DNA of 64,000 nt from Oopsacas minuta (taxonomy: Eukaryota; Animalia; Porifera). Numbering within the stretch: the stretch's first letter is position 1; each line of letters begins with the position of its first letter. A program made the position numbers and the translations under genes. Under the pieces are notes generated by a model. It was given only the letters and a program-made list of their open reading frames with translations, did no database searches and was not told where the DNA came from. The DNA is taken from assembly GCA_024704765.1 (NCBI GenBank), contig JAKMXF010000298.1, forward strand, positions 186,001 through 250,000. The letters are read 5' to 3'. Positions 1,147 to 64,000 of this stretch are shown here, piece by piece.

Positions 1147-1446
1147 ATTTTGTTGTTGTTTACTAAAATCCACAATATATTTCCAATTTCTATTAATAAT
1201 ACACCTTGAAAGTATTGAAACCAATAACCACTGAAGGTATTAAAAATGGCAAAGTTCGATTATATTGCTATAATTATAATGTTCAGAGACCTTAGATCAG
1301 TCTCTGCCGAGTAATTTCTCCGAATTTATAATATCTTTCAATTTTTCTGCGAATCATTTTGCTCCCCAGACCTGCTCCGTGTTCATTACTATATAATTGT
1401 AAAGTGAATGTAAATACGATATTACCTTTCTAGTTTGCTATCAATA

Positions 1447-4400
1447 ATGGTTAGTGAAAGGAAAAGATTCAATAGTATCGATCAGTTAGCTTTTTCTAGA
1501 CAACATGTAAAGACATCCAAGAGCGTTGAAGATCTTACAACTATTTCTGGTGAGTGTATATTTGTATAATTATGTGAATTTTTTTCTAATTTATTCCAAA
1601 TAATTTTTGTTCAGACATATCTCCCGTAAATCTTCTTCCACCCAAACCTCCAAAACCTCACAAACCATCTCATCTCTCACAGCCTATTTCTCCAATTTTC
1701 AGAAATACAACTATATCATGTTCAGACTCAACAGGTACATTCATTGACATTCCTTTTGACAGATTTAGTAACCAACGTAAGAGCGAGCCTATTGTTCCAA
1801 CATTAAGCATTATAAATAAAGTAGAACCTGCAAAACCTCCAACGCGGCCTCCTAAGCCTCACAAGCCTGTTTTCATCCCCAGAATATCTGTAATAGACAC
1901 TACAGACTCATCTAAATGCTTGAAGCGAGCAGCTAGCTCTCCTAGTAGAAGAAGAGCTAACTATTCTAACTTTACTCTTGGTGAAGAAGATATAACAGAG
2001 GTAAGTATCTAACACCCCAGCACAGTGTACTATAGGAATGACGAATTGTTCTGAGACATAATTCTTCGGGAAGAGGACACTCTGAACTACCTTTTTGCAA
2101 TTTTGAGCAAATAAAACAGATTTATTGGTTTTGAGATGTGACCCTTTGTAGTGTAATAAGTATTTATTATATTATATTACTGATCTATTATTTGCCTGAA
2201 ACCTGTGTACGTACATACAATAATAAAAAAAAAAACTGTCTTTAGATAAAGATACATGACAAAGAATTGAGTGATTTCGCTTCACACATCCAGAATATGC
2301 TTGAGAAAGCAAGCAAAGAGAGACGTATTTCAGATGTAGCTACATTTGCTAACGAGCTGTTATCAGCTCCGATACTAACAGAGGAACATTTAGCTCTACA
2401 ACACAGCCAAAAACTAAAGTTATTCAGCCTAATGGTCTTGACAATAGAACCCAATACAGAAATCAGCTCTTTTGGATTTGATATAGATCTTTCTAACAAA
2501 GCAGTACACGTTTTGGTCGAGAAAAATACATCTTTTCCAAAGACGAAATCTTCGCCAACTTTGATAAATGTAATCTTGAAATCAAATGCTAAAGATTTGA
2601 TATCAATCTTCTTACAAACTGTAGATAGTGATTATGATAGAAATGAAAGTGATGATTATCTATTGAGGATATCTGGTACTCAGTTTTACCTTAAAAACAC
2701 AAAACTACCTCTTCATAGGTAAGTTTAGTAAAGTCTGGTTATACGTTGTTATGACGAGAATGGTGGTCCTTATATGCTTATTAGTTTCTTAACCATGGAT
2801 AGTGGATTTGATTTTCTTAAATTTACAGGTTTCAGTATATTCGCTATTGTCTGAGAAGGCGAGAAGCTCCGCGTTTTATGCTAGAACATGTACCTCGCTT
2901 ATATACAGAGTTTTGTAATACTATATACGAGGAAATTGATATAATCTCTAATGAGAAGTTCTTTGAAAATGCCTTCACTGATATTCTAAAAGAGTCATGT
3001 CCAGAATTGCTCTACTATCAACTCTTACAAGTACCAGTTGTCTATAAGACTCTCCTGGATAATCTGGAGATGATGAGAGAGAGCAAGGTTGAGGGTAAAG
3101 AATGGATGCATATTGGAAAACTTAAACATTTAGAACAAACTATTAAGTTATTAACTCTACAGATGGGTAAATTCAATTCATTTCTATTAGAAAATTCTCT
3201 CAATCAAATTTTCAAACTGCATTCTAGGTATGTTTCACAATTTGACTGGAATTTCTTTTTTACTATATTTTTCTTGATTTCTCACATTTGTTTTCATAAT
3301 AGTATATTTTATGTAAGCGGCTCCTACCTGTGTCAATCTCCCCTTGAAAACGGTTGGGGAGCGCAACTTCATGTGACGAAAATTATCTAATTTCTCATTT
3401 AGACATAAAAACTCAGGCTTAGACGCTAAAACCAAACAAACAATTGCAAATGAAATTCAGACCATAATCCTTGAGGTAGAAGATCAAGTAATCATGCATA
3501 TACAAGCATACTCCCTTTTGACTAAAATTCCTATTTCTCTTGGTTCAAACAAGAGTATTGAACAGGTATCACAGACAAGAACTTATCAACCTAACTTCCC
3601 ACGAAATAAGAACTCTAATCTTCACGTATGGATTGGAGGTATACACCGTATCCTGGATCATCAACCAACTAGACCGAAGCTGTACTATCTAGAAGCAGTG
3701 TTGATGTGTGGTGGAAATGAATTTTTAACTCCAGTGAGTTTTATCTCAGTCAAATCTCGTTAGATTGATATTTAGTATACATCGGTTATATCGAAGAATT
3801 ATCGTGGCTCTTGAGCTTGGGCATAACGGGAGTTAACTCTATACCTAGAAGTTATGATTAAATTATAATTATCCATTTTTCTATAGACTCGCTCAAGTTA
3901 TTGTCGATGTAATCCAGGCAGATTCTTCACATACATTCACTGTAATCTCAGTCTAGACTTAGGCGTTAATTTATACCAGATACCCAGAGAATGTTATCTC
4001 CGTATCTCTCTACACTCACAGCTTGAGACTGATGATTCATTCATCAACGCATCATTGAAAGCAACAGGGTATACACCTATATTCTGTACAAACGGAACTG
4101 TTAACAAACATTATGCGTATATACCATTAGCTGAAGATAAGGCAGATTTTCCTTGTGATTATTTAGCTCTTAATCATACTGAGAACAACTTAATGTTGTT
4201 AGAAATTCAGTTACAGAATATTCCTAAAAATTCATGGGATAGTCTACATCAGGAATTGACTGTAATTCCAGAAATATCTAACTCTAATTTAAATACGAGT
4301 ATTGATTCTGAATACTGTACACTTGGATCTTCCTTCAACACTCTGGGTAAGTTTATATTATACAGGAAACCTCCACTAAAGGGGAAACTGGGACCCTGTC

Positions 4401-8358: not shown

Positions 8359-8416
8359 CATGTTGTTCCTCTCAAAATTAAATTATTTTAAGATTTATCC
8401 CGCTTCATAGTAAAGT

Positions 8417-9589: not shown

Positions 9590-9605
9590 TAGTATTTTAG
9601 CTTCT

Positions 9606-12209: not shown

Positions 12210-12344
12210 GTTGTAAAAATGATCAGATATCACGAATATATTATTATCATAATTACCTAAATATTTTTATTTATTCGTTCTCCGCGAAAAATTACCAATT
12301 TATACATTCTTTCGCGAAATTCAGTTAGATAAATCAACAAATCC

Positions 12345-13475: not shown

Positions 13476-13560
13476 TGGTGTATTGTATTATTATAATTTC
13501 ATAGGAGAATTCTATGTAAATTTCTTTATAAATTCGTGGTTTTCGTATATTTTAGAAAAA

Positions 13561-14889: not shown

Positions 14890-14956
14890 TTTATCATAAT
14901 ATTTCTCATAATTTCAAAGTTTTTATGCCTTTTAAGATAGAATTTAGATTTTCAAA

Positions 14957-17050: not shown

Positions 17051-17252
17051 CATATTTTCCTAATCGGTTTCTAATTCGTTGAATATGATCTTTTTACGAT
17101 TAATAATGTTAACAATAATTTATATTACTTCCCGTATAGCATCTTTTAGTTTCAACTAATTATTAGTCTTCATTCAATAGTCATAGTTTACTCGTTTGTA
17201 TAATAACATTACGTTAATGTATTACAGTCAATTAATTTTAAATAGAGTTAGA

Positions 17253-18421: not shown

Positions 18422-18646
18422 AGGTTTTTAGAGAAATCGTTGTATATTTTACCTATTTTGATTGGAATATATCTACATTTGACATACTTGTCTTTGGTTC
18501 ATGTATTTTACTAGCTCTATTCTGAGTATTGTGATTAAGCAGGTTTTGTTAGAATGAATTTGGTTTTTTTGCAAATATATTACCATATAAATTCAGATTA
18601 TTTGTGATGTTTTAATCTTACTAGTTTGTTCATAAAATTCATTTTA

Positions 18647-21839: not shown

Positions 21840-23162
21840 TTATGGATGTTGGAGATTTGTAATATCAGTAGCAATCTTTATGTAGAGGTTTCCGCTTTTT
21901 ACAAAAGCTTGTTTTTTGAAGATATCTTGTTTTGCGAATCTTTTGAAACCTGAAGGTATATTATGAGCCTCACGCGGTTTAGCGAATGACGAAGAAGTTT
22001 TTTCTGGGGTAAAAACTTCCGTGATTGTTTCTACATCTCCGAAAGCCAATATTTGGATAGCAACCTTTTGTAAAAATGGCCATTGAAGTATGTCGTCATA
22101 TGGTCCTTTGTATATACAAAAGAACAAGGATATATACTCCCCATTGGCATCGCCTTCGCCATTCAGATACAATTTGACACCCATTTTGTATCCGTTTTCG
22201 TGGGAATAAAAATGCGGTGAGTATAATGGGATCTGGTTCTGTTGAGCTATCTCATGTTTCTTGACTACATTTTCGATTATCCACACTAAACATCCATCAG
22301 TTCTGCCTCTGCCGACCTGAGTTAGCTGGCTCACCTCATTTTTCAATTGGTTTATTTCACATTCAAGTCGCAATGTAGTAATTTTACATACATTTGCTGT
22401 ATTTTGGGCAGTTTTAATTTCTTCAATCATATCTTTAAGGTGATCTGCCCCACTTATTCCTTGCTCGATTATGTGATTTTTCGCGTGTGTGAACATTTTT
22501 TGGTGATCAATCACCTCCTTGCAGGATTTGCAGAACATATTTTTGCAATTTTTAGCATGATTTTCAAAATTTGTGTGAGCAACTTGATCCTGACAATTTG
22601 CACAAGTGATATACAAATCGCATTCAATCCTATGCTTTTTACGCTCAGATCTATAGAAAACTAGTCCACAGATGCAGGTCTCAAACGTGCATAGATCTCT
22701 GTGTTCACTTTCATCTCTTCTAAGATAAACCATATCACAGTGTATACATTGGACGGGAATCATTTCACATTCATTCATATGCTGATCCAATAGTCTGATT
22801 TCATTTTTCCATCCACAACCTAATTTTCTATAATTGCAGTAGCAGATTAAGGTTGCGATTTTATTCTCCAGTTCTTCATCTTTCTCAAATATCGGAATCA
22901 TATCTGAGCTAGTGAATTCCTGCTTGGAAAGATAGCATATCCGACAGTAGCTTGCTCCATCTACAGCTTTTATTGGATTTCGCATCACCCCTCCACACAA
23001 CATGCACACTACATCAGGTGGTACTGTTGGAAATTTCTCTACAGAAATCTTTGTATTCCCGTTCTGCCCTGTTACATAATTCTTATCTGTAAATTCTTTA
23101 TGTATTATATTGCCTAGGTTGTCACTCCTCGCTATATTACTTGTAATTCTCCTCGTAGCCAT
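21840..23162 (-). CDS. TRAF-family protein (degenerate RING, TRAF zinc fingers, coiled coil, MATH/TRAF-C)
   Basis: The MATH domain is clear (DGCLVWII, LYSPHFYSHENGYKMGVKLYLNGEG..YISLFF, YDDILQWPF, F.KP...NIPSGF). Zinc-finger repeats C...C...H...C are present. Single exon. Confidence 0.9.
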   Translation of the reverse strand: MATRRITSNIARSDNLGNIIHKEFTDKNYVTGQNGNTKISVEKFPTVPPDVVCMLCGGVMRNPIKAVDGASYCRICYLSKQEFTSSDMIPIFEKDEELENKIATLICYCNYRKLGCGWKNEIRLLDQHMNECEMIPVQCIHCDMVYLRRDESEHRDLCTFETCICGLVFYRSERKKHRIECDLYITCANCQDQVAHTNFENHAKNCKNMFCKSCKEVIDHQKMFTHAKNHIIEQGISGADHLKDMIEEIKTAQNTANVCKITTLRLECEINQLKNEVSQLTQVGRGRTDGCLVWIIENVVKKHEIAQQNQIPLYSPHFYSHENGYKMGVKLYLNGEGDANGEYISLFFCIYKGPYDDILQWPFLQKVAIQILAFGDVETITEVFTPEKTSSSFAKPREAHNIPSGFKRFAKQDIFKKQAFVKSGNLYIKIATDITNLQHP

Positions 23163-23431
23163 TTGGTTTTGACTTTACATAAGTGTATTTTGTAATAAAT
23201 AAGCTCTTATATAATTTATACTGCAGAGTCTATCGCAACTATGCTAGAATATTCAATTTTAATATAACTCGACAATCATATATTAATGTCTAACATGCTT
23301 ATTGTAAAATACGTAAAAATGTACACGTATAACGCTTAATGACGTCTAACCACATTTGTAATTGAATAAGTAACTCCATTTCTAATTATGTTTTCTTAAA
23401 ATATTTCTCTACCATTTTACTAGACCAATTA

Positions 23432-24713: not shown

Positions 24714-24786
24714 AGGCTTATTTACTATACTAAATGAAAGTAAGTTTATTCACAATTCTGTATTTAGTGAAAATTAGCTAATAGAG

Positions 24787-25835: not shown

Positions 25836-26226
25836 CTTTTCTTTTCTTTTCTCAATGACTCTAAAAGTTAGTCACAAACTGAGATTACTAGTTTACTTAT
25901 TTCCCCTTAATACTCTGACTAGTGTATTTGTTGATTGTAGTTAGGCTCTCTTTCATACCATTTAATTGTTTCTGTTAATAATGTAGGGCCCAGCGTGCTG
26001 CACAACTTGCATCTATTTTCAACTTAATTTTCAACCATCTTTCTACCATCTAATTGCTACTATTACAACTACTACACATCCATCTAACTACTTTCCATCT
26101 AAATACACCTGCGCTTCACTTGATGACTAACTTGCACTGTTCCAACTATCCAAATTTGCCATTTTTATTCGTCTATATTTATTCACATTTGTTTCTGTAT
26201 GTTTGCTATTAGTGTTAGCTTGTTAA

Positions 26227-29879: not shown

Positions 29880-30218
29880 ATTGTATCAATAGCTGAGATT
29901 ATTTGTTTACGTACAAGCTATAGTTACATGTGATGATTCGCGAGATTAATAGCATCGAACTAATATTATATAATCACAGTTATTTCTGGAATATTGTGGG
30001 CAAATGTAAAGATTCTAAGATGGACAAAAATACCAAATATTTCATTGGGGAATATGTTGTTGATTTCTTTCTGGGACTGTCATTATTCCAATTGCAAATT
30101 TATTACACTTTTTCTCGTGGCTTGTGAATGCATGCTTATTGATAAATGTATTACTGTAGATTATTAGTTATTAGCTTATACGTCGTAAAGAGAAATTGTC
30201 AACACGTACGTAGATAAA

Positions 30219-31091: not shown

Positions 31092-31387
31092 ACTGAGGAA
31101 TATATGTACCTCTTGTGATTATACTTTGAATATATTATTTAGTAATTATTATTTTAATATTAATAATCGGAATCTGAATTATAAGAAATCACATATTTCA
31201 TAAAACAATAGAAAATTTAGAATTCAAGGAAGTCTTTCATAAGACAAAGATAATCACCAATCTCAGGTTTCAGTGATTTCCCATGACATGTCTTAATTTC
31301 TATAAATAGATCTTGTGCTCAGCTGCCCGATACTAGATACCATTGGAGATTATTAATCATTATCATTAGCATAGTTTGATATACTAA

Positions 31388-32700: not shown

Positions 32701-33044
32701 TAAATGTATTCAAATAGCAACACGATCACCATTATAATCTTAAATCAAGTTTGTTTACTTCATATGATCAGAGAAATTAATATATTTACCGTTAAACCGC
32801 AATTTTCAGTCTGTGTGTTAGTTACGGAATTTTGCATCTGGCTTATTGAATTCCAGAAATTTCTATTCAAATATTACAAGAAAGTGTAATACAAATTTTT
32901 TTGATAACAATCTCCAACATAATTACTTAGTCCCTTAATTGATTCACCTTTTGTTAAAATTAATTGTGAGTATAATCATGTACAATAGTCTTCTCATACT
33001 TCCTCTATAACAAATATGTGTTTATGTTATACAAATGTGTAGAG

Positions 33045-35621: not shown

Positions 35622-35740
35622 TACTATACTCTTAATATTTCTATGTTATTTCCTTATATTAATATCTCTATTTATCTCAAAATATATTTTCATAATTTTT
35701 ATTTGTTATCATATTGTTTATCGTATGTATTATTAGCGTA

Positions 35741-37826: not shown

Positions 37827-39145
37827 TTGCTCTATAAAAATTGAAACAGATAAATGAATCCCGTTTTGCTCCTGACAAATATTTGTATAATCTCCATCTC
37901 TAAGGCTCCATCCTATCTACATGTCAAATCCCTAACTTATATTCTACAACTTGAACCCATATACCCTTTATCAAGTATATATTTATACATCTAATCTGCA
38001 TTTAAACCACTTGTCAATCATATATTGAATCTATCGCTAATAATACTTTGAATTAATAAATTGGCTAATCACTTTAATGTTTGACACGGGTTGAATAACA
38101 TAAAAGTGAATAGGATAATACTTCAAATGATTCCTATAATTACAACAGAACATGATTATACAATGATATACTACTTCATTCGTGTATGTTTCATGTTCCT
38201 AGTGTTTTAGAGGAAAAAAACAAATATTAGAGGGCTTTCATAATTCGTGTGTTTTTACTATATTTGTTTATTTTAGACATTTTCGAGTACTTTTCATTGA
38301 ACTGGTTCTTGAATGAATTGCATTATCATAAGATTAATTTTTATAAATTTGAAGAGACATGTCACTCCTTCCAAAATCATAGGATTTGACCGATTACGGG
38401 CTATGTTTATCACCGCAATGACCGAAACTAAATTCCCACAAAAATTTCTACATTTTTACACATTTCGATATTCAAAAATTCAAAAATTCGGTTAAACTTC
38501 ATATTCGCTTACGATTGTTGCAACATTTTCTACAAATCGAGACACTAATCGAATCTCAATAGTTACATTAAGAATTAAAGGTTAATAATTATTTCGAAAT
38601 TGCCCATTTTAGAATTATGTAACAATATTAATCTACTAAGGACTTGCTATGTTTTATTGTCTAAAACTATTGTTAATTCAAACCCCATCAATGTTCATTA
38701 ATTCCTCTTTAATTTTACCATCTGTGACTGACTCAAGGACAATTAATAACCTGATGTGATATTTGCACCTGATTAAACTCTTGTCCACACAATCTGCTCT
38801 ACACAAACTGCTAATAATGGACTTGAATACATTTATCGTTAGAAACCATCCAATGCATTCCCATTAATTAGCTATTTAGATAACTGAATGATAATTATCA
38901 GCTCACATACGAAACAGTAGTTATGTATTTGCTTATTCCTTTATGAGGATTCGAATTGATAGGACAATTAATTAATAATTAGGAAATTGTCTCTTTAATC
39001 ATAATAACCTGAAGACATTAATATTCGAGATAAACAGCTCTCATATGCTAACGTTCTTTGTGTTAGCAACTTGATTGATCGAAAGGAATTTGTTGTTTGT
39101 AATATTTAATTGAATTCCAAATGATTAACTTTATCATTAGCACCG

Positions 39146-43421: not shown

Positions 43422-44175
43422 TTAGACAGCTGGGGCGGTTACCTGTACAGAACTAGCTAATGGCATCGGGTATAGTGCAGGTGGTTGGATATTTGCCAAT
43501 GAGACAAATTGGTTAACTTGTGGCAATGCAGTACTCAACATCTGCTGACCCTGGATGCAGTAGCTGGTGGGTATGTTCAGGATTCCTTGGTTGGGGATAA
43601 CTTGTGCCATGTGTAGTTGGTAAGGGTTTAGTGCAGAGAGGAGGGCTCTGTTAGGGTCAACACGAAGTTTTTCGCGTTTTCTCCACTTTGCACGTCTATT
43701 TTGAAACCAAACCTATAATAGGAAATATCATCATAAATATGAGTTGATGTTTTGCGGAAATATTAAATGTTTTGATATTTACCTGAACTCGAGCTTCACT
43801 CAGATCCACATGAAAAGCCAGTTCTTCACGGGTAAATACATCTGGGTAGTGCATCTTTTGAAATGTACGCTCTAGCTCAGAGAGTTGCAAGTTGGTGAAA
43901 GTTGTCCTGTAACGACGTTTCTTTTTGCCTGGGGTTTCCTCATCCATTGAGTCTGTTTGGAAATCTTTCTCACTGTCTTCCCCGAGTAAATTCTTTTCAT
44001 TCTCATTCTCATCTGACAAGCTCTCATCTGAATTGTCCAGACAGTCAATCTTAACTCCTTCTTCCTCACTAATATCCATTGATAGTGAAGAACTCCTGCT
44101 AACAGCTGTATCAACTTTCAAGCCTAGTAATCCATTGATAGTATAGTTGTAATTTTTTGTGTTTTCGCGATCCAT
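43422..44175 (-). CDS. PRD-class Q50 homeodomain transcription factor (aristaless/Arx-like)
   Basis: [48 protein letters not shown]|[12 protein letters not shown], with an intron (43782-43713) at the classic codon 46/47 position. The 3' end is uncertain (see findings). Confidence 0.92.
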
Positions 44176-46083
44176 TTGGTCGTTAATTCAACGATTTATT
44201 TTGTGCGCTTTAACTATATTCTTCGTATATTTATAGTGCATGCAGTTTTCTAATAGAATGAATGTATTGCGAAACTAATTGCCAGAATATCTCTCTTCAA
44301 GGTCTTCAGCCTTACTGTATACAGCGCTAGCTAGAGCCTTTTTAAACTGAGGATATTCTTAAAGTTGATTTTTCTTGAGAGCTATTCTTTGTATCTTTAT
44401 ATAGATTTTCCTGCGAGCTCAAATTATCTCTTTAGATGATGAGTATCACAACTAATTATCGTATTCTTTCATCCACACACTTCTAATTACCTCTTTATCG
44501 ATCACATGTGGTCTATTAGTTCATAGCTACATTTTAGCTGCTGTTACATAGTATTATTTACTAATTGGCCTATTGTATTGTCGATTTACTCTTCTAATCT
44601 ACTTGTCACATCATAGTCCTACCACATAAACTAGAATCAATGTTTATTGCTTAATCGTGTAAGTACTAGTGAGTAATATTATTTCAATGCTCTCTTGACA
44701 ATGCTACATAAAATCATAATGCCTTAGCTTATTGGCGGATTTATCGTTTGTTGAGATATTCATTATATACAAATTTCGATATCAAATAGTTGGATTTTGT
44801 TGTGAATACCTAGGATCTGTCAATGCATTATTTGGCCTAATGACTTGTGAATTTTGACGGAAACCATGAAAAAGGTCTGAACTACCAAACGCAAGCCTAC
44901 AAGAACTCAAACCCCCAAAATATTAATCAACACAATAAAACACCCAATTGCAATCGTTGCATTGTAGAAAAGAAAATGGTTTGTTGTCTGAGTGTTCTAC
45001 TTTCAAAAGATATTGGCAAGGAACTAACTCATTACCATATTTTTCAAGTTATAATTTGATCTTTTGTTCTGGTTCCTCCTACCAATATTCTAATTGTATA
45101 ATTTGATATACCTCAACCATTTATTTACATAAGATTAGCTTAATAATTTGATTAGATTTTAATTAGCATAAAATGAGATAATTACTTTTTTCTGAATTAA
45201 TTATGCCAATTAATTACGAATTATATTTCTTATTATTAATTGCATTATGTCTTATATAACTTTGCACTACTTAGTTAGTAGTAGAATTGATCAGTTTATT
45301 AACTTACAAACTGTTTTATAGCATTTTTGTAATTGCTAAAATGATTTTGAATTGTTTGGAAAAGACGCATTTCTTTGAATTCTACTAAATATCCATTTTA
45401 GCAAAGATTGATAAGATTGAATTTTGATAATCTTGTTAGACATTACAAATGTCAAAATCGAAGTATACGTCCTGTTTACTCCTAATTAACAAGTGGAGGC
45501 TAATCTCTAGGATAATTTTGTAATATTCACCAAAAGGTGTGAAAATATACACAGGAAATTTTTCAAATGTCAGGTGCACATCTAGATGTCACTACGAGCA
45601 CATATGCCCAATTTGGTGTCTTAATCTCTAAAGGTGTGAACAGCTGACCGAAATATAGGTACTTAGTCGCACACAGTAAAAGTTGTTTCATTTCATATAT
45701 TATTATTTGATTTGAATATTTTCTAGCAAATGGTTGGGAACATTATTGAGTTGTTGTTTCGTACCACGGTGACCTACTTATTCTCGAAATTTATATTGCT
45801 TATGTTTGATCATATTAAGTTATAAAATTCAAATTATCTCAATAAACTTCTCGCAAAGTCCACACAATTATAAATTACTTAGTAGACTTTTAGTTCAACA
45901 AGGTTACAATTCTTTGCTCTAAAAAGAATGTGGAATAATGAGAGAACCAATTTTAGTTATTTATCATGCCAGCAAACAAAAATACATTATTATATTTTGT
46001 CTAGACCTCTCGTGTTGATCCACCCTTCTCTATTGTTGAAATTGATATTTCTTTATAAACAAAGTCTAGATTTACAAACATAA

Positions 46084-48469: not shown

Positions 48470-49625
48470 TAATATAAGTGAATAGATTACAGTTGAGTTT
48501 AACTATATATTTTCACGTTTTCTATAGACTTGGTTTAAAGCTATCCTTGATCTCTTACATTTCTTGTATTTTACTTTCTCAATGATTCTATTTTTCTATT
48601 TTCAAGGTTTGCTTCATAGCAAATCACTTTCAATCCGTCAAACGCCAGATTTTCAGTAAATTTAATATCCTACTCTTTTATCGCTTGCTAACTCTTCTCA
48701 TCAACATTATACAAATATAGTACATACATGCTACATACATGTTCTTTCTATTTCAAACTGCATTTCTAACTTGAATAAGCATTATAATACACGTGTATAA
48801 TATATTAAGCTGCTCTCTCTCTTCATTTAATTATGGCCTGCGACATAACGAAATACAATAGGATGTTTTGTTCAATCAAGTATCCATTACTTAGACAAAA
48901 CAAGTAAGTACCGAAAAACCAAATTATTTAATTGGACCATAATAAAGTTCAAAGAAATCCATGAATTTGATTTTATGGAAATTGGAACTTTATTTGCTGC
49001 AAATTGTGTGTTTTTATGCATTGTTTTAATAATGTATTACTCTCTTATCAGCTAATTTAAGTTTAATTTATCTGTCTTCATGTCTATGCGTTTTTCAAAC
49101 AAAGCAAACACAAATTGTTTTTCTAACGTATTGTCTAACTTAATTACTAAATTTTTGATCTTTATGTGTTTCTTGTTAGAGCAAATTGTTGTTAAATACG
49201 TCGTTCAATTATTTGTTTATTGCAATATTATTTCTCCATTGAATAATAATTATATTATACTTGAATAATTAATATTAAATTGAGTATTAAATATTTCATT
49301 AATTGGGTTCTTATAAATTATATACCAATTAAACTAGATTTGTGATGAATTGTTTTTGGTCACAGACGTGAATTTACATTTACTTACTGAAATCTATGAT
49401 ATTACTTTCATAAACTTCCTACAATCATACATGCAATACGAATACATTACATTCTTTCATATGTAAATCCTACATATATTGTTACATAAATTCGCGAAAT
49501 TAGAAAGTAGACAATGTTCATAGAACCCCCCAGATAGGGTGGAGAGTGTTGTCCATTTCATAGACATAAAGTTTACGTGTTTCCTACATTGCATTAATTA
49601 AATTAGCTTACTATCGCGCAGAAAG

Positions 49626-50747: not shown

Positions 50748-51539
50748 CGAAAACTGATTACAGTAGATTATCATTTTCTTGTTTATTTCAATTATTTGTA
50801 ATTTAGTTGGCATATTATTTTTTATTGTATTTCCAGAATGCTTGCGTCAATCACATATATGGTATAATTCATAAATATGTACCGTTTTCTTCGTCCAACC
50901 CCCATTCGGGGAAATGCATGTGCAGAAAATTTAATCCTTCAATTCCCTTACGAGTAAGATAACTTTTTAATATATTAGCTAATTCATTGTATATTCTTTA
51001 CTTTTGCTTCTCAAGCAATACATAATCCACTTGCCCTTTCTGCTATTTAAATATGATGACGCTAACACTGAAATTTTAGCATTTGTGTGCTTGTAACCAT
51101 ACACCGCTGATAACGTTAGGCATTGAGATATTTAGCTGTCTTTTTTGATTTGCCAGCCAGAATCTTACTTTGTTTCTCTCCCACCATTGCATTCTTTTTG
51201 TATACAACCCTTCGTATGACGTAACTACGCTAATATCTTACTCGAATATCCATCCACTATTTATTGATATTTGAGATCTTTCCCCATTACTTCGTGGTTA
51301 AAACTTTTACTATTTCTATGACTAATAATTTCATATTCTCCTTTGTTAACTATTTGATATATTTTATCGTCAAACTATCGGATAATTATGCGCATTATTT
51401 AACTTGATTAAATGTAAAATCATAAGCATTAACTGCGTTTTCAATTTTCTGCACACGAGCAATTAGTTTTGACAGATCCCTCAATAATTCTCTATCATTC
51501 CAAATTGTTTTAGATCTCAATACTTTCTAGAAAGGAAGA

Positions 51540-52352: not shown

Positions 52353-52962
52353 TAATACAGACTTTTGCTTTTAACTTTGTAGTCTATTTTGTATATATGT
52401 TTGAGAGAGATTGTATTTTGTTGGCTGTTTTTATTTATCACAGAAGTATTACTATTGTTAGTAATAGGTTTAGGCGTTTATCAAGTTTAATTAACACCAC
52501 GGATTTTTATCATTTCCTTTGTAATTCTTCGTTTATATGTTTATACATGTCTAAACTTTTATCCATTGTTCATTACGAATATATTCGGTGATGAATTTTC
52601 GTGCTTCCTCATGTTTGGCACGCTCTGTCTTTGCCACATCTGGGTGTTTATACCGAGGAACATTTGTGATTCCTTCTTATTTTCTCCTTTTCTAGACTAT
52701 TATATCTAGTTCTATCTACTGATATAAATTTTTGTTTAAGTTATGAACAAAGCAATTCATCAACAATGGTATAATAATTGAATTATTTATTATCTTTTAG
52801 GAATTCTAATTCTGTAAGATAGACAATGCATCTGTAATCTTAAGATATGATTACAACAACTGTATTAGGTATAGGAAAATATGATAAATTGATCATATTA
52901 CATCTAGAACATAAAATATACCTAACTTTTATTATTCTCTATAGAATTTTGGTTTTAGTAAG

Positions 52963-53760
52963 ATGGGAAAGAAGGCACTTGTCAGTAAATTATGTATCGT
53001 TACGCTGTTGATATTGATAAATCTCTTCGCGGTTGTATTAAGTTTGTTTCTGATATCTGCTGGTATAACACTCATTGTTATTGCAAGTGAGAACGCACTA
53101 AAGCTGGAATCATTATTATCACTAATCGCAATCCTTCTTGCGTTGGGCGTTCTATTCCTGCTCATCTCCATTCTGGGTTTCATTTCGAGTATTTCCTCGA
53201 TTCCTTCACGAAAAGGTTTCCGTATATTCTCCACTATTTCACTCACCGTGTACATGATCGTTCTGCTCGTGTTGATTCTAGCTCAGATCGGAGCGGTAAT
53301 TGCAGGGTTAATTCTTAGAGATAATATCGCCACTGACGGTACACTCAATGAAGTCTTTGAGGGATTCGTCCAACTGTATACCAACCCTGCTGTGATGGCT
53401 ATCTTAGACGGATGGCAAAATGGATTCGGTTGTTGTGGGTATATCAATTATACAAGTTGGTATATTAACGATTCAAACTTTACCTCCCCTAATCTCCCAG
53501 ATTCTTGCTGCAACATAACCTCATCACAACAATGTAATATTGCTAATGCTTATACAGATGGGTGTAGCCCAAGACTACTCGATATTGTTACTAACTACCT
53601 TGGCGCAGTTATCGGAGTTTTCGCTGGCATATCTGTGTTTCAAATCGCTGTACTTATTGTTAACCTGTTTTTGATTTGCTGCATCTGGCTGGATAAAACA
53701 GGAGGGGACTACGACTTCAAAAAGGGCCAAAACTATGCGATGGGTACATCATATCCTTGA
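52963..53760 (+). CDS. Tetraspanin (tandem copy 2)
   Basis: Four TM helices; FGCCG, PDSCC, GC. Shares MGKKAL, LESL and ISSISSIPSR with copy 1. Intronless. Confidence 0.92.
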   Translation: MGKKALVSKLCIVTLLILINLFAVVLSLFLISAGITLIVIASENALKLESLLSLIAILLALGVLFLLISILGFISSISSIPSRKGFRIFSTISLTVYMIVLLVLILAQIGAVIAGLILRDNIATDGTLNEVFEGFVQLYTNPAVMAILDGWQNGFGCCGYINYTSWYINDSNFTSPNLPDSCCNITSSQQCNIANAYTDGCSPRLLDIVTNYLGAVIGVFAGISVFQIAVLIVNLFLICCIWLDKTGGDYDFKKGQNYAMGTSYP

Positions 53761-54614
53761 ATTTTTATTATTATTTTCCCTAATAGATATACATTTCTTT
53801 AATTAACGAATGCTAATAGCTGTATAGTACTGTTTGTTTGCATACATAAATGTATATATTTGTGTATATTTAGAGTTTATTATTTTGCTGAAATATGATA
53901 AGGATAAAGAAAGCAGAGCATTAAGGGAGCGCTCTAATTTAATTACAAACAATTTACAAATTTCATCTTAGTTCTATAATAAGTGGAAGCTGGGACACTT
54001 TTGTATAATTCACAATTTATGGAAATCGATTGGAGCTAGGATCCCAGATTTCCAAAAGTCCAATACCGATTTCTTTTCGGGGCTGCTTTTTACGAAGGTC
54101 TTCTAAGAAAGGTTTCTTGATAGGGATGAGCCCTTGTTCAGCAAGCACTACTGCCAGCAATATTGATCATATATATTGATTACTAAAACCTGCTTCATTA
54201 TATCGCTGAATCGTTAATTACCCATAATTTCTATAGGGATTCCCTAAGACATGTAATTTCATGGTGTAGGACGTAGGAAGCAAAAAATAATTTTGATACG
54301 TCAGGTATATTGTATCGGTCTTAGATCTCACTCGTGGCCAAAAAATGATGAACGCTTAACATTATCAAAGGTAGTCCAAAACAATAAATTTTACTGAATA
54401 ATAATACCTAATTAGGAAATTTGTCCTTTTTTAGATTGTGCTTAAGAGTCTGAGTTTAATTTAGTACTATTCGTAAGATGACATCAAAATATCTTTCAGC
54501 TGAAGCTAATAGACAGAATCATTATTTGGAAATTCATTCGCTATCGAATGTTTTCTGCAATTCTATTTGTATGTTTGTTATTGTTATTTTCCTGTTGTCA
54601 TTTTAGACATTATA

Positions 54615-57600
54615 ATGGGTCGTGATAAAGAATCAGAGAAAAGAAAGGATTACAGAAATAGAGGGAGGGATGATGTGAAGAAAATAAGTAGTAGTAGATC
54701 ACAGGATAAATCTCGTTATTCCCCAACTAAATCACGGAGGACTACTCCACCAAGATCAAGGAAGAGGTCACGGTCACTCTCTCCTAAATCAAGGAGATCT
54801 TCTCCCAGGAGAAGATCTAGGTCTAGATCTCCACGGATGAAACGAAGGTCTCCTTCCCCTAGATCAAAGAGACGCACCCCATCTCCGAGACACAAGAGGA
54901 GATCTCGATCCCCTAAAGGAAGAAGGAGATCACCTTCCCCCAAGAAGAGAAGATCTAGTATTGAGCGATCTAAGAATCATCTATCAAAAGAACGAGAATA
55001 TAGAAAAGGTAGAAATTATATAATCAATAGCCTCTACGTAATTTTACTAAGTTTGGTCCAAAAATGGGTCGATTTTCGCGAATTTTGAATTGTAATTCGT
55101 TGCTGGAAAACTACCCCAATAAATGGAGTGAGAATTTACTGTACTTAAAATTGTGATTAATTATTCTAGAAAAATCGGAGCCGAATGGAGTTTCAAAACC
55201 GAAACCACAAGTTCCGGAGGATACGGTAAGTTTCCCAATGGAACAGTCTAATATTGATGATGAGATGAAACGTCGCAGAGAAAGAATCGAAGCCTGGCGA
55301 CTCTCTCGAAAACCTGATGAACCGCTAGAACAACCCGAGGTCAAAAAACCGCGAAAGGAGTGGACGCTAGACGACGATGAAGACGATGGAATTTCAAGTG
55401 ATTCAGAGGTTGAAGCTGGAGAAGATAAACTAGAAGATATTTCTGATAAAAGTGATGGAGCTGATCCATTGGATGAGTTTATGGAAGGAATACATACTGA
55501 AGTATCTGGATTAAGTGGAGTTCAGTTAACAGGAAATTTAAATAACGTTGATAAAGATGGGAAAGGTTTTGTGGTGATATCAGGCGAGAAAAAGCGCGAT
55601 AAAATCACAAAATTTGGTGCTAATAAGGGAGACATAATGGTGGACATGGCTGATGGTTATACAGGAGAATCTGAGGAAGAACCAGGTGAAGAGAGTTTTG
55701 CTACAATAACCAATATGTATCGTAAGAAGGAATTAGCTACAGTCGATCACTCACTAATACAATATCCTGAATACAGGAAAAGTTTCTATGTTGAAGTGCC
55801 AGAGTTAACACGAATGAGTCCAGAAGATGTGGAAATAATGCGTCAAGAATTGGAATCTATTACTGTTGTCGGGAATGATTGTCCTAACCCAATTAAGCGT
55901 TGGAGTCAGTGTGGTATATCTTCAAAGGTAAACTTTAAAAATACGATAATTGGGGGAATATAGAAAAATATTTAAATCTGATATCTTTGAAGCCATTCCA
56001 ACATGAATTGAAACATTTTAGGTATCTATTCGTTAAATGCCATATAGAGTGAAACAATTTCCTGGGTATTCCAATTGAATGACATCTTCATCTTATCCTG
56101 AAATTCGTATTACGCGGTGCCACATTATAAACATTGTTGATATTTTCTCTAGGTAGCAGATATAATGAAGAAAAACAAGTACGAGAATCCAACTCCAATT
56201 CAAGCACAATCTCTACCCGTAATTATGAGTGGTAGAGATATGATAGGCATTGCTAGGACTGGGAGTGGGAAAACTTTAGCATTTATATTACCCATGCTAC
56301 GTCACGTTATGGATCAACCACCGTTACAATTATTTGACGGACCAATAGCATTATTATTATCTCCAACCAGAGAACTTGCATTGCAGACTTATAAAGAAGT
56401 TAAAAAGTTCAGTAAATCGCTAAAATTATGCGTTACATGTGTGTATGGAGGTGCTGGCATAAAAGAACAGATTGCTGACTTGAAAAGAGGAAGTGAAATT
56501 GTGGTTTGTACGCCAGGTAATCCCATATGTACTTTCATATTTTTAATAATTATGGGAAATTACAAAATCCTAAATTTGGATGAAAAATTTTCTGAGTCGG
56601 GTTGTCTAAGTGAAAAATATGCGTGAGTAAGTTTGAAATATAGATTAGTAAGTTTGAAATATACAGTGCCAGTCAAATTAATAAGCACGATAGAAATTAT
56701 TTTAAAAGTATACATTTATCCGGATTATAGCATATATTTCAATGAGTAGGAATAGGGAGAGACATCTCAGATTCATATCTTTGAAAACATGCTCGAGAAC
56801 AGTGTAATTTGAATATAACAAGAGGATAATCTGCTGAAACTCAAAATATTTGAGAGAAAAAAATAATGTAGACGTATATCAAAAGTTAAAATGTAGGGGG
56901 ATGATTATATAGAGCATCCCCCCCGGATCTACGCCCCTGTATATATTTATTTATACTATGCATTTTGTATAGGACGGATGATAGAGTTATTAGCAGCAAA
57001 TAATGGTAAAGTTACTAATCTCAGAAGAGTAACATATGTTGTATTGGATGAAGCCGATAGGATGTTTGATTTCGGTTTTGAGCCACAAGTATCTAAGATT
57101 ATGAATAACACGCGGCCTGATAAACAAACAGTAATGTTTTCAGCCACATTTCCGCGTTCAATGGAGATTCTAGCAAGGAAGATTCTTGTCAAACCAATTC
57201 AGGTGCAAGTTGGTGGTCGTAGTGTTGTGTGTAAAGACGTGGAGCAAAATGTGGTTGTTCTAGACGAAGATAAAAAATTTTTTAAATTACTAGAGTTATT
57301 GGGAAACTATCTGCAGGATGGCTCATGTTTGATCTTTGTTGACAAACAAGAAATTGCTGACATGATTTTACGTGATTTATGGAAAGCCAGTTATACATGT
57401 CTTTCTCTACACGGAGGTATGGATCAATATGATCGTGCTTCAACTATTTCTGATTTCAAATCTGGCAATATCAATGTCCTTGTTGCAACATCGATTGCAG
57501 CTCGTGGTCTAGACGTACGTCATCTATATCTTGTGGTTAATTATGACTGTCCTAATCATTATGAAGATTATGTACATCGTTGTGGACGTACTGGTCGTGC

Positions 57601-58612
57601 AGGAAATAAAGGAATAGCTTACACATTCATTACACCGGAGCAGAAAAATTATTTCGGCATATTAATTCGCGCTTTTAAACTTTCAGAAACAGAGGTACCA
57701 CGAGATCTCCAAGAACTTTATGATAAATATGTTGAGCAGCTCAAAGCTGAAGGCAAGAAATTGCCCTCATTTGATAAGACAGACGGTTTTAATAAGCGTT
57801 GTAGTGGGTACAAATTCGATGAGAGAGAGGAAGCGACTCGTGATGAAATGCGACGTGTTCAGAAATCAATACACGGTGTAGATTCGGATGATGAAGAAGT
57901 TTCCACTGCTTTGGATCATTATGGGAATAAACTGGACAGTGCTTTTAAGAGTAAACCACATATACGTGAAGCTAGTATTAATCCGTATCTGCCTCTAGCA
58001 GGACCACAGGTAAGTAAGGAAACGGGTAACATTGCCGCGGTGAAGAAAGCGCAGTTAATAGCTCAGCGTTTCGAGCTGAACAAGAAAATTGTAGTCCCGA
58101 ATCCAGTTGAAAATCCTCATCAACGTGCTGCAAATGAATTTGTAAACACAGGGACATTGAAATCTTCTGTCTCAGCTAAAGACATTGCTAGCCATTTAGC
58201 AGCCAGCATAAACATGCGGATTGGTGCGCCTACAACCTCTCTATCTCAAGCTATACTCCCCCCTGGTGCAAGACAAGCATTGGATGGGAAAGATGGTAGG
58301 CCTAATGCTGTATACGAGGATGAAGTTGAGATAAATGATTTCCCTCAACAAGCACGATTTAGAATAACTCACAGAGATACACTTGATCAGATAACTGAAG
58401 ATACAGAATGTGGTATTACAGTACGTGGTATTTATATACCGGATAATCAGAAGCCGAAATCTGACGAAAAGAGGGTTTACTTAGCAATGGAAGCACACAC
58501 AGAGAATGCAATTGAACTGGCAAAGAATGAAGTAAAAAGAATTTTGAGGGAAGAGTTACAAAAAATCGCACTTAGACCTACTCCCAAAACTGGTAGATAT
58601 AAAGTGTTGTAG
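54615..58612 (+). CDS. DDX46: DEAD-box helicase DDX46/Prp5
   Basis: RS-rich N-terminus, [41 protein letters not shown], and a C-terminal KH-like [10 protein letters not shown]. Exons about 54615-55008, 55170-55927, 56153-56517 and 56972-58612. Confidence 0.95.
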
Positions 58613-58924
58613 GATTTGTGTGTTGTATCAACAGATTATTAGGCAGAACTTCATTCAGAATCATATCTATATTTCCTAAAAATATTCAATGAAATGATAA
58701 CTTTCCACTTTTGCTTATTTATTTGGCTATTTATTAGGTTAGAAGTTTGATGTACGGTGTGAAAAGACTGGTATACTTAGCTTGATAGTATCTTGATGGG
58801 AAGATTATCTTATCAGGTAAGTAAATACAGTTGGTATATCTTACAGAAGAAGATGGTATTCCAAATTGGTCAAAAGTTTGCATACAAAAATATTCAATGA
58901 AGTTCTCATATTAATAAATCGTAT

Positions 58925-59617: not shown

Positions 59618-60049
59618 TTAATATCGGTCGTCGAAAAAAGAATACTTACATTTCTTCACGCTAGCGTGCAACGGAATTCCACTGTTTTCAGCTTGCATTA
59701 GAGCCTGATACTTTTGGATATCAAGTTCTAGTTCAAATTTTTCCTCCTTCAACTTCTTTCTCCTATCAAATAACCTGTGTTGTTCTGTATTCCATCGTCT
59801 CTGCTCTTTTCTACGAAGAATCATAATTTCTTCGTATTTATAATGGTTCTTTGGATAAAGAATTCTAAGCGTTTTTAATGTCATTTCAGCTAATTCTTCC
59901 CTTGTGTGCTCGTATGGCCTATCCTTGTTTCTCATCCTCGATTGACCCATATCAACGGCGAAAGTTAGCTCTGTTCTGAAATTCTCTTCCACAAATAATG
60001 TGTTTATAGCTTCACAATTTTCGTCTCCGCTTATTCCATGGAAGTCCAT
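59618..60049 (-). CDS. Small divergent Maf/CNC-like bZIP protein (paralogue 1)
   Basis: TREELAEMTLKTL..YEEIMILRRKEQRRWN...R followed by the zipper LKEEKFELELDIQKYQAL; clearly related to the 60737-61093 ORF. A possible GTAAGT donor near 59648 means the C-terminus may differ. Confidence 0.55.
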   Translation of the reverse strand: MDFHGISGDENCEAINTLFVEENFRTELTFAVDMGQSRMRNKDRPYEHTREELAEMTLKTLRILYPKNHYKYEEIMILRRKEQRRWNTEQHRLFDRRKKLKEEKFELELDIQKYQALMQAENSGIPLHASVKKCKYSFFDDRY

Positions 60050-60208
60050 ATCTTACTGTTTGTTTTAAACAAATTTGTTATTTGTTTTATAATGTATAAT
60101 ATTTGGCCTTTTATACTTCAAACTAATATTTTTTATAATGTATGATATATGTTTATACAATCGAAATTTTCTGTGATATCCCAGAATGAGGTATTAAAAA
60201 GTAAGCTA

Positions 60209-60736: not shown

Positions 60737-61093
60737 TTAAATAACCGTCAGTTTTTGTAATTTCTTGATTTCTTCTATAAGAGTTTGTTTCTCGTTTAAG
60801 ATCGCCTCTTTCGTTTCTTTTAGAATTTGTAATTCCTTGCGAGAGTTAGCTACATTTATTCTGACCTGTTCTCTTCGTCTTATGATTTTGAATTCTTCAT
60901 TCTCTCTTTCACTGCGACCGGTTAAGAAATCATTCAGTTCGATTCTATTCATTTTATGTAACTTTTTCGATAGTGCTTTATCTTTTGTGTGCTTTTTTTT
61001 CAAATAACACATCAAGATTTTCCCAGCTAATACTGTCTCAGTTTGTTTAATTTCCATTAGTATTCGGATGTTTGTTTGTTTGTTTATTGTCAT
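60737..61093 (-). CDS. Small divergent Maf/CNC-like bZIP protein (paralogue 2)
   Basis: LHKMNRIELNDFLTGRSERENEEFKIIRRREQVRINVANSR aligns without gaps to the Maf extended homology plus basic region [41 protein letters not shown] (15/41 identical by hand), followed by L/I heptads. Confidence 0.62.
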   Translation of the reverse strand: MTINKQTNIRILMEIKQTETVLAGKILMCYLKKKHTKDKALSKKLHKMNRIELNDFLTGRSERENEEFKIIRRREQVRINVANSRKELQILKETKEAILNEKQTLIEEIKKLQKLTVI

Positions 61094-61766
61094 TCCTCCT
61101 TTTATACGTAATTTTTGGACACTGAAATACCTTTTACAAATTGTACAAGCTAATGAGCTTACATTTTCAATTACTCTCTAATTCTTTGAACTTGGATCTA
61201 AGTTCTATCGGTAATTTTCCCTTGAATGGTGCTTATTGTTACACCTAACTAAAATGTTGTACAACTAGAGATTATCAATCGAAACACTTGAAAGCATTTA
61301 ATGCGTAGATAAAATATACAGTTTAGCCAACATCGTTTACATAATTACAAATACTGTAATATCATATATCTAAGGGATTTTCTAACAATGTATATTTGAA
61401 CTAAATCCATGATACATCCCTTGTTGGATGGAGCAACTCTTAAGGCAATATTCTTGCACCAAAGTATTGTCTCTAAAATTGCTATTTGTAACTTACAAAT
61501 TTCAGAATTATTCTTTTAGGACAAATATATTGTGGACAGTTCTACGGGTAGCTATTTGGAATACTGTTTAGCTTACACACGTGTATTTCTTTATTTTTTT
61601 GCTTGTATTCAATACCATGTTTTTTTCCGCGTAATACAAGCATTTGACAAAAATTTATTTGATACTAACTTTAGAGACAATCGCCTTTGTATATAGCTTT
61701 GGTATTTGCAATGATATCAATAAAGATATTTTAATTGAGGAAATGTATTGTTATTCCATTAGCTAG

Positions 61767-64000
61767 ATGTCTAGGTTATTATTTTATGGTTGTCGTGAGG
61801 GATATGCAGATGTTGCCAATACCCTGCAAGGGTTAAAACATGGCATAAGATCATTTTCAAATACACACTTACTCCCGCCATCGAATTATGCCCTACGGAA
61901 TAATCATAACAATTTGATCCAAACAACCGCGAAATGGGCGCGAAACATACAAACTGAGACACAAACTTCAGGCTCTAGCATACCTCCGTTTCAACCACCT
62001 AATGGAAAAGTCACAACAGCTCTATCTCAAGCTCCACCTTTACCCACTCAAGAGAATATTCTGGAACAAAGTGCGAAGGTTAAAGATTTGCGAGATGAAA
62101 TATCTGATATAGCAAATGCTGAGAAGAATGCAGATAAGAAAATGGAGAAAAAAGTATCTGCCAAACCGAGTATTTGGGTTAGAATTAAAAATGAGACATT
62201 GCATTACTATCATGGTTTCAAGTTGTTCTTTTACGAAGTGAAAATATCAACTAAATTCCTTGGGAAGATTCTGAGGGGGCATTCACTAACGAGAAGAGAG
62301 AAGAGACAACTTGAACGAACTGTTGCAGATATCTTCAGACTTGTACCATTTTCCATATTTATTATACTTCCGTTTATGGAGTTTTTGTTACCAGTTGCAA
62401 TCAAAATATTTCCAGGATTGTTGCCTTCAACTTTCCAAACTGTCCAAACGAAAAATGAGAAAATTCGTGCTGAATTGAAGGTCAAGTTGGAGATGTCAAA
62501 ATTTCTTAGAAATACCATGGGAGGTATTAATTACCAAAATATTTCGTAGATATTTTCTGTAAATGCTTTTTGTTTTTTTTTTTCAGAAATGAGTGTACTA
62601 AATGAAAAGAAAGAAGGGCCAACAATTCATGAATTTGTGGAATTTTTTGAAGCAATTCGTGAGAGAGGAGAGAATGCTCATGTTGATGATGTGATTAGAT
62701 TCTCACAACTTTTCAGAGATGAGTTTACGTTGGACAACATGGCACATGCTCAATTGAAGGTATGTGAAGTATTTATACTTATAATGTTTTCAAAATAAAC
62801 TATTTCATTTTATGAATGATATACATACATGCACCATGTTCATTGTGCATGATCGGCTTTACACCGTATATGTCGATATGTCCATGGTTGTAACTTGTAG
62901 TAATAATTATTGTATCAATTCACTCCTGCTTTAGCCTATAATACCTGGTTATTCTCCTGGGTAATTCATATTTATTCAATTCGCAATATCCACAATAATA
63001 ATAATTACACTGTATTTATCCCTAGTTAAATTTTTATATATTCGTTGTTATTGATACACCATGGCTAAGTAGTTAAGTTTACCTGTCTAGTTTATAAACT
63101 TAGTTGATTCAAAAAGTTATGGCAGCGGTGGGATTCGAACCCACGCCTCCGAAGAGAATAGTGCCTTAAACTATCGCCTTAGACCGCTCGGCCACGCTAC
63201 CTATAATTCATAAAATTACATTTTTCACCTTATAAACCATTATTCCGTACATATTCTTTTCTACTTTAAATCTATGAAAATATCTTGACAATTATCCTGA
63301 AAATTAACAATAGGCTCTCTGCAAGTTATTGATGCTAAACTCTGTTGGTACAAGCGCACTGCTTCGACTGCAACTAAACATGTGTCTGCGACATTTGAAA
63401 GCTGATGATAATCTCATCAGAAAAGAAGGTATTGACAATATGACATCTTCAGAATTGCAATCTGCTTGTCAAGCTCGTGGAATGAGAGCTGTGGGCATGA
63501 ATGGGAGAAAGCTGAAGGAGCAATTATCATTATGGCTAAACTTACATTTAGATAAACAGGTGCAGTTCTTATATGCAGGTTTAACAATTTCATAATTTTA
63601 CGATGGATTCTCATCGTAAATTTGCTTCGAAATGCTGAATTTCTTTCGCAAATATGATTTGATTTTAGTATTTTTCAAATTTAGCAATCTGTATTGATAA
63701 TTTAGCCAATGAATCTACAGCAAAGAATTAAAGAATTATTAATTACAAATTCTAAAATGTGTAATCTAGAAAAATCGAGGACAAAAGTTCATTTTTGATT
63801 AAAGTGTTTTGATGTTGCAATCACTAATTTAATGTATTAATATTGCTAACTAAACTATCTTTGACAACGAATCAATTGTTATACGTTTTCATAAATAGGT
63901 TCCTCCATCTCTTTTACTACTCACACAAGCCCTCACTTTAAAATCACATGCTCCAAATCCAGAAGGATTAGGCAAAACTCTTTCTGCTCTACCAGAAGAG
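61767..64000 (+). CDS. LETM1: Mitochondrial inner membrane protein LETM1 (3'-truncated by window edge)
   Basis: HYYHGFKLF, LTRREKRQLERTVADIFRLVPF, FPGLLPSTF, LQSACQARGMR and WLNLHL. Exons about 61767-62523, 62588-62760, 63314-63559 and 63899 to the end. Confidence 0.94.
63111..63115 (-). terminator. Pol III T5 terminator of tRNA-Leu
   Basis: TTTTT on the minus strand, 4 nt after the tRNA 3' end. Confidence 0.8.
63120..63201 (-). tRNA. tRNA-Leu(AAG)
   Basis: The reverse complement GGTAGCGTGGCCGAGCGGTCTAAGGCG-ATAGT-TTAAGGC-ACTAT-TCTCTTCGGAGGCGTGGGTTCGAATCCCACCGCTGCCA has A and B boxes, a long variable arm and a paired anticodon stem. Lies in a LETM1 intron. Confidence 0.96.

Follow-up and report, generated by a model that had tools for sequence, protein, structure and literature searches.

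Spliced-leader (SL) trans-splicing is already known in the glass sponges, or hexactinellids, from which it was described on the basis of expressed sequence tags by Douris et al. 2010, as cited in the relevant passages of PMC7986045 and PMC5619915. In the closest described case, Aphrocallistes vastus, the passages of Francis et al. 2023 (PMC10282587) that deal with the leader give it a length of ~37 bp with many variants and place it on just 4% of long cDNA reads. Here we examine a 64-kb stretch of the genome of Oopsacas minuta (assembly GCA_024704765.1, contig JAKMXF010000298.1, positions 186,001 to 250,000 of the forward strand), referred to throughout as the window and numbered from its own first letter, in which TAG triplets immediately ahead of the start codons of forward-strand genes very probably act as 3′ splice sites, that is, as outron acceptors, for SL trans-splicing. 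In the mechanism that we favor, the leader would be the 5′ exon of a small SL RNA carrying a GU donor and an Sm site, and the spliceosome would join this leader to the outron acceptor while the RNA upstream would be discarded. The genome paper of O. minuta makes no mention of trans-splicing, spliced leader, operon or polycistron.

The two sponges belong to the same animal class, and in both the leader stands at mRNA 5′ ends, maps away from the gene and comes in several variants; A. vastus further resembles O. minuta in its compact genome and many single-exon genes, with extensive synteny between the two. What has been observed differs, in that the ~37-bp leader of A. vastus on 4% of reads compares with 21 nucleotides (nt) of leader seen in O. 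minuta, an acceptor signature at 22/22 forward-strand genes and a joined leader at 4/4 genes checked by RNA. The likeness is drawn from the description of the A. vastus leader rather than from its sequence, and the passages of that paper describing it contain no analysis of acceptors or spacing.

With SL1/SL2 trans-splicing in Caenorhabditis elegans the locus shares an acceptor a few nucleotides from the ATG, a discarded outron, same-strand spacers of ~100 nt and a mix of trans-spliced and non-trans-spliced genes. The acceptor itself is different, being TTTCAG in the nematode and TAG with a non-G base after it in O. minuta; moreover, O. minuta gives no evidence of an SL2-type downstream leader among the two variants seen, and polycistrons, a feature of the nematode, are a hypothesis here. 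Oikopleura dioica and Ciona likewise combine a compact genome with very short 5′ untranslated regions (UTRs), acceptors near or abutting the ATG and operon-like runs, although they represent another phylum with an unrelated leader, and tunicate operons are often almost spacerless whereas the tightest spacer in the window measures 85 nt. Spliced leaders are also said to have been described from ctenophores and Hydra by Derelle and colleagues in 2010; we know of no operon-like organisation reported in these animals, nor, to our knowledge, are their leaders known to be related to that of O. minuta. They resemble the sponge in being non-bilaterian animals with several leader variants (Hormiphora, PMC8527503).

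The TAG signature ahead of forward-strand start codons

The window is gene-dense, with a G+C content of 35%. GenBank gene calls, whose starts were taken from the loci returned by exact-protein look-up, comprise 22 forward-strand starts, identical to the ATGs used in a preliminary description of this DNA, and four minus-strand genes. Forward-strand genes lie in runs of nine (1-21358), eight (23432-41383) and five (46084-58742). Two start sets were used, namely the GenBank starts and a blind rule that takes the first in-frame ATG of each open reading frame; the GenBank starts of the Cys-rich receptor (17253) and the CCDC170-like gene (33045) are second in-frame ATGs.

The preliminary description had reported a TAG ending 0-22 nt ahead of the ATG at all 22 forward-strand genes, and with the GenBank starts every one of the 22 distances was reproduced; under the blind rule, a TAG lies within 22 nt at 20/22. 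Its estimate of the background was too high, as TAG occurs at 0.0148/nt on the forward strand (0.0175/nt in non-coding sequence) instead of the assumed 0.02/nt, and the empirical chance of finding a TAG within 22 nt, taken over all positions, 1183 other ATGs and 284 non-coding ATGs, is 0.29-0.31 instead of 0.35-0.45 per gene. That the pattern exceeds chance nevertheless stands, with p ~3e-9 even at 20/22 (2e-9 to 6e-9 across the binomial calculations). A threshold-free Mann-Whitney comparison of TAG distances gives p values of 7e-9 to 2e-7, the median TAG-ATG distance being 8 nt versus 45-47 nt in the controls.

CAG, GAG, AAG and TGA show no enrichment before forward-strand starts, CAG being present within 22 nt at 2/22 and TGA at 4/22, and the behavior of CAG rules out a general AG or YAG enrichment. 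Of the 22 TAGs, no more than 4 share the reading frame of the ATG, and the signature is therefore no artefact of open-reading-frame boundaries; a stop-codon artefact of the reading frame is ruled out on the same ground. The T-rich tract noted earlier ahead of the TAG is real and modest in size, the fraction of T at -15..-4 being 0.42 before start TAGs versus 0.33 before all TAGs (p = 9e-4). The base directly after the acceptor AG is never G, and we infer an acceptor that is predominantly TAG followed by a non-G base. A cis-intron acceptor profile derived with a dynamic-programming gene finder was dropped, as annotated protein length was matched for 5/11 genes, and comparison with cis introns was restricted to two that are verified by RNA.

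Compositional or translational context, such as an AT-rich Kozak-like sequence or selection for upstream stops, could also place TAGs before starts without any role in splicing, and TAA and TAT are indeed frequent within 22 nt (13-14/22), as expected in AT-rich spacers. TAG, however, is the rarest of these triplets and is yet enriched (20-22/22), while TGA is depleted and few of the TAGs are in frame. The RNA ends described below coincide with AGs, and the four minus-strand genes are without the TAG, which leaves an origin in sequence context with next to no probability.

RNA junctions and a shared leader

The junctions were examined on assembled RNA-seq contigs, as distinct from raw or 5′-complete reads, over the region 49550-55549 with its four gene starts. 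Runs X1, X3 and X4 are among four runs of the same sample, and run X5 comes from a related organism, B (2024). Run X4 behaves as RNA because its depth differs 1000-fold between exons and spacers (700-23000 versus 14-180), it carries two GT..AG joints present in no other run, and it has TruSeq adapter ends; runs X1 and X3 are DNA, with flat depths of 88 and 195.

At the chitobiase-like gene (CTBS; ATG 49626) the X4 contig maps from 49605 and is preceded by 19 unmatched letters, TCTTCATAAAAAAACTTAC, and at the DDX46-like helicase (ATG 54615) the loose end AAAAAACTTAC stands ahead of 54605. These ends verify as acceptors the TAG at 49604..49606 (+) and the TTTTAG at 54604..54606 (+), 19 and 8 nt upstream of the respective ATGs, as predicted. 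The loose end AAAAAACTTAC recurs ahead of 51512 at tetraspanin 1 (ATG 51540), where it verifies the acceptor TTTTAG at 51511..51513 (+), 26 nt upstream; the nearest TAG (51528-51530, 9 nt from the ATG) falls inside the RNA form seen. At tetraspanin 2 (ATG 52963) the loose end CTTTCATAAAACTAAA stands ahead of 52939, within a variant-leader junction zone at 52939..52944 (+) whose acceptor TATAG ends at 52944. Here, too, the nearest TAG (52956-52958, in TTTTAG) falls inside the RNA form, the junction lying at or before 52944. The variant leader has TTCATAAAA in common with the main leader and likewise ends in AG.

The same leader end, ...AAAAAACTTAC, is carried by CTBS, tetraspanin 1 and the DDX46-like gene, which lie 2-5 kb apart. 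The shared leader family ends ...CATAAAAAAACTTACAG, and the leader measures at least 21 nt (...TCTTCATAAAAAAACTTACAG), with at least one related variant. For the three identical ends, the match to the genome sets in at the A of aattAG, ttttAG and ttttAG. A start at this A is most simply read as a leader that itself terminates in AG, with the joint directly behind 49606, 51513 and 54606. All four junctions coincide with a 3′ splice site (aattAG, ttttAG, ttttAG and ctatAG).

These results bear directly on the preliminary description, which had proposed that outron acceptors receive a common leader and that collecting clipped 5′ sequence at the AG positions would reveal it. Carried out on the RNA contigs, this check found a joined leader at 4/4 genes, and the proposal is supported by the same leader, foreign to the window, at three genes and by a related variant at the fourth. 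The equation of the nearest TAG with the acceptor held for CTBS and the DDX46-like gene and failed for tetraspanin 1, with its site at 26 nt, and for tetraspanin 2, with its junction no later than 52944; the nearest TAG is a good marker and not invariably the site used. Joining takes place at an AG 0-26 nt ahead of the ATG, where the leader replaces the RNA transcribed upstream, and the resulting mRNAs share their 5′ end, with gene-specific 5′ UTRs that are very short. We infer that most forward-strand genes of the window use SL trans-splicing and that the other 18 acceptors function likewise.

The leader is encoded outside the window. Its 19-mer has no match there with up to 3 mismatches, the variant leader none with up to 2 and a 13-mer of the leader none with up to 1, and an exact search of the scaffold stretches examined around the window for the 12-mer at its 3′ end, AAAAACTTACAG, was likewise negative. 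Among the loose ends listed for the DNA runs X1 and X3, the leader was not seen.

It might be suspected that the leader-like ends are artefacts of library construction or assembly, produced by template switching, chimeric contigs or adapter remnants. Such an origin is very improbable, although each junction is represented by one assembled contig and adapter loose ends do occur elsewhere in the same run. The leader is unlike every adapter sequence seen as a loose end in these runs, and it is joined exactly at the acceptor AG of four independent genes, just upstream of annotated ATGs. A Logan contig, which we take to be assembled at k=31, crosses a junction only if reads do. The same mechanism has, in addition, been published for a related sponge.

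Low-depth RNA was also found upstream of the acceptors. One stretch, 53991..54634 (+), passes through the DDX46 acceptor at a depth of 20 versus ~1000 in the exon; a second, 50892..51494 (+), lies on the spacer between CTBS and tetraspanin 1 at a depth of 36.8 versus ~1000 upstream and >10000 downstream; and a third, 52379..52971 (+), lies on the spacer between the two tetraspanin genes at depths of 184 and 69 versus ~13700 in the exon, and continues through both candidate tetraspanin 2 acceptors. The first of these is outron or precursor, and contains a cis intron of 64 nt at ~54369-54434 (joint 54368->54433, GT..AG) that is present in the RNA run only. As this read-through contig is cis-spliced, it represents RNA precursor and not DNA contamination. 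RNA reading through or up to the acceptors amounts to 0.5-4% of downstream exon depth, and the observation that the preliminary description had named as contrary to leader addition, reads continuing genomically through the AG, is confined to this small fraction.

The cis intron upstream of the DDX46 acceptor lends some substance to an alternative in which the TAGs end ordinary cis-spliced introns of the 5′ UTR and every gene has a non-coding first exon of its own, and some spacers, at 600-1600 nt, could house such an exon. Under this alternative, however, it would be hard to place the identical 11-19 nt that occur on three genes 2-5 kb apart and are encoded nowhere in the window; among the joints reported, none links an upstream exon to these acceptors, and the spacers of 85-135 nt are too small to accommodate an exon and an intron together with a promoter. 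We regard private first exons as very unlikely. A related proposal, that the genes owe their shared 5′ sequence to a single cis exon >49 kb upstream that is alternatively spliced across a giant transcription unit, would accommodate the long same-strand runs and the low-level continuous RNA over the spacers, but it is extremely improbable: the forward-strand run is broken upstream by TATA-box genes on the minus strand (43422-44175 and 21840-23162), the 49 kb of the window upstream of the RNA-checked genes do not contain the leader, a second leader variant exists, and SL trans-splicing has been described from this clade before.

SL trans-splicing is the reading that we retain, and several points weigh against it. 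Just 4/22 genes were checked by RNA, each through one assembled contig per junction, and the leader is partial, with at most 21 nt seen and its gene, donor and Sm site not found. Since the nearest TAG is passed over for another AG in 2/4 of these genes, the other 18 predictions may be off by tens of nucleotides, and alternative acceptor sites may coexist, since the loose ends listed are a part of those present. CTATAG is common to the variant leader and the genome, which makes the tetraspanin 2 junction ambiguous within 52939-52944. The pyrimidine tract before the TAGs is enriched just modestly, and with a leader on 4% of A. vastus reads, pervasive use in glass sponges is not established elsewhere.

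Searches with leader patterns did not find an SL RNA gene in the window or in the other loci examined, and an Rfam scan of the window returned a tRNA as its sole match and no SL RNA gene. This tRNA-Leu (anticodon AAG; 63120-63201 (-)) sits downstream of the LETM1 start, probably within the LETM1 span. Among public metagenome contigs the leader 19-mer has 40 matches, unrelated and mostly in bacterial-looking contexts, which we read as chance. Two contigs from an animal-associated metagenome (L043:234-432 and L045:1857-2055) have a stretch of ~29 nt in common that includes the 19-mer, followed by no GT donor. Sm-type sites are AATTTTGG-like, and by eye no such motif was recognisable in this host repeat, which was rejected as an SL RNA gene and likewise read as chance. 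A look-up of transcript contigs by exact protein (ECSIT, the tetraspanins and others) returned the genome assembly as sole carrier. In a relative, contig L012 begins 38 nt upstream of the ECSIT ATG, yet this beginning consists of plain genomic sequence, the same as in L009, and offers no evidence of a leader; contig L013, which belongs to a more distant relative, tells nothing about the leader either.

Several further features of the RNA-checked region were observed. Organism B of run X5, which differs by ~4% over the coding stretches 49663-50742 and 54572-55549 and has small indels immediately before the DDX46 acceptor, represents either a close relative or a population that has diverged. A segment at 53937-54235, a multi-copy repeat within the spacer preceding the DDX46-like gene, shows a ~20-fold depth excess in both DNA runs and in the organism B run, and its edges interrupt the DNA contigs. 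RNA contigs run straight into adapter at 50806 and 53809, 59 nt past the chitobiase-like stop and 49 nt past the tetraspanin 2 stop, respectively. Such contig ends may mark defined 3′ ends, in which case the 3′ UTRs would be very short; the RNA contigs that end there show no A-tail.

Minus-strand genes, predicted acceptors and relatives

The minus strand of the window carries a MATH/TRAF gene (21840-23162), a homeobox gene (43422-44175) and two small bZIP-like genes (59618-60049 and ~60740-61093), all of which have a TATAWAW box 13-66 nt ahead of the ATG. Such boxes are rare before forward-strand genes and have a background in the window of ~1 per 1000-1300 nt. The box lies at -58/-51 of the MATH/TRAF gene (upstream region 23162..23230 (-), ATG 23162), at -60 of the homeobox gene in the form TATAAATA (44175..44240 (-), ATG 44175), at -42/-66/-88 of the first small bZIP-like gene (60049..60140 (-), ATG 60049) and, as TATAAAA, at -13 of the second (61093..61160 (-), first ATG 61093). 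None of the four has a TAG within 38-73 nt of its ATG. The preliminary description had singled out the homeobox gene as having no close acceptor, and this holds for its nearest TAG, 38 nt away, and equally for the other three, with no TAG within 67 nt at the MATH/TRAF gene and the nearest at 73 and 56 nt at the two small genes. Judged from these upstream regions, the minus-strand genes probably have conventional promoters of their own and perhaps receive no leader, which suggests two classes of gene expression in one locus, with acceptor genes and TATA-box genes serving as an internal control for each other.

The remaining 18 forward-strand genes, outside the set of CTBS, tetraspanin 1, tetraspanin 2 and the DDX46-like gene covered by RNA, have acceptors predicted from sequence. 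In the first run these are TAG 1431..1433 (+) for PI3K (ATG 1447), which also has a TATAWAW at -57; TAG 8408..8410 (+) for an MSP-domain gene (ATG 8417); TTTTAG 9598..9600 (+) for an LRRC49-like gene (ATG 9606); TAG 12326..12328 (+) for CTU2 (ATG 12345), whose ATG lies 135 nt from the upstream stop; TTTTAG 13553..13555 (+) for ECSIT (ATG 13561), 85 nt from the CTU2 stop; TAG 14945..14947 (+) for an EXD3-like gene (ATG 14957); TAG 17249..17251 (+) for the Cys-rich receptor (annotated ATG 17253); and TAG 18622..18624 (+) for RBM19 (ATG 18647).

Past the MATH/TRAF gene on the minus strand, the first forward-strand gene is WDR74, with a predicted acceptor TAG at 23421..23423 (+) and its ATG at 23432. 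It is followed by an SR-protein gene (TAG 24782..24784 (+), ATG 24787), a TOPAZ1-like gene (TAG 26216..26218 (+), ATG 26227), AAGAB (TAG 30211..30213 (+), ATG 30219), whose pyrimidine tract is weak, and a DUF4515/CCDC166-like gene (TAG 31372..31374 (+), ATG 31388). Candidate acceptors then precede the CCDC170-like gene (TAG 33040..33042 (+), annotated ATG 33045), CEP70 (TAG 35734..35736 (+), ATG 35741, 119 nt from the upstream stop) and a TDRKH-like gene (TAG 39138..39140 (+), ATG 39146). Farther along, a BTB-Kelch gene has a predicted acceptor TAG at 46067..46069 (+) and its ATG at 46084, and at LETM1 the predicted TAG at 61764..61766 (+) abuts the ATG at 61767, a distance of 0. At 17217 in the Cys-rich receptor and at 33024 in the CCDC170-like gene, an in-frame ATG precedes the predicted acceptor. 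Both would fall in the discarded outron, in agreement with the choice of the second ATG in GenBank.

Conservation of the signature was examined in three related assemblies, presumably other glass sponges, which carry ECSIT homologues 65-76% identical on long contigs. All three relatives keep the order MSP, LRRC49, CTU2, ECSIT, EXD3, Cys-rich receptor and RBM19 on one strand. With the orthologous ATGs placed by tblastn, a TAG is found within 22 nt at 17/17 (null 0.31, p = 3e-9), and the sequences upstream of these ATGs, judged by eye, have no evident similarity. The spacer between CTU2 and ECSIT measures 69-87 nt across all four species.

Gene spacing and the reach of trans-splicing

The shortest distances from stop to ATG in the window are 85 nt for CTU2-ECSIT (13475-13561), 119 nt for CCDC170-CEP70 (35621-35741) and 135 nt for LRRC49-CTU2 (12209-12345). 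Tight pairs of this kind may share a precursor because 85-135 nt leaves little room for a 3′ UTR plus a promoter, and trans-splicing would, at these pairs, also separate the genes of a common precursor, in the manner of nematode and tunicate operons. The low-depth RNA in the RNA-checked region covers three spacers of 610-854 nt, which could hold promoters, and its contigs do not prove one molecule. All four genes there carry a leader, the variant being seen on one (n=1), from which no link to gene position can be drawn. It is a tentative possibility, to which we give somewhat less than an even chance, that conserved same-strand runs hold most genes of this sponge and give rise to polycistronic precursors, which SL trans-splicing cuts into single mRNAs, with a minority TATA-box class expressed conventionally. 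Operons are not reported in hexactinellids according to the relevant passages of a 2021 survey (PMC7986045), and if the proposal is true, O. minuta would provide the first case of operon-type genome organisation among sponges and, more widely, among non-bilaterian animals.

In summary, what this locus adds to the SL trans-splicing already described from the group is a partial O. minuta leader, an acceptor rule (TAG, then a non-G base, 0-26 nt before the ATG), a near-universal signature on one strand, its conservation in relatives and a contrasting class of TATA-box genes. Because every forward-strand gene of the window bears the signature, our observations suggest that glass sponges use trans-splicing far more widely than the 4% of A. 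vastus reads would indicate. Together, the leader and the acceptor rule would fix start codons and 5′ UTRs in annotation, as at 17217 and 33024, and the signature combined with conserved spacers of 70-135 nt makes operons in an early-branching animal lineage directly testable.

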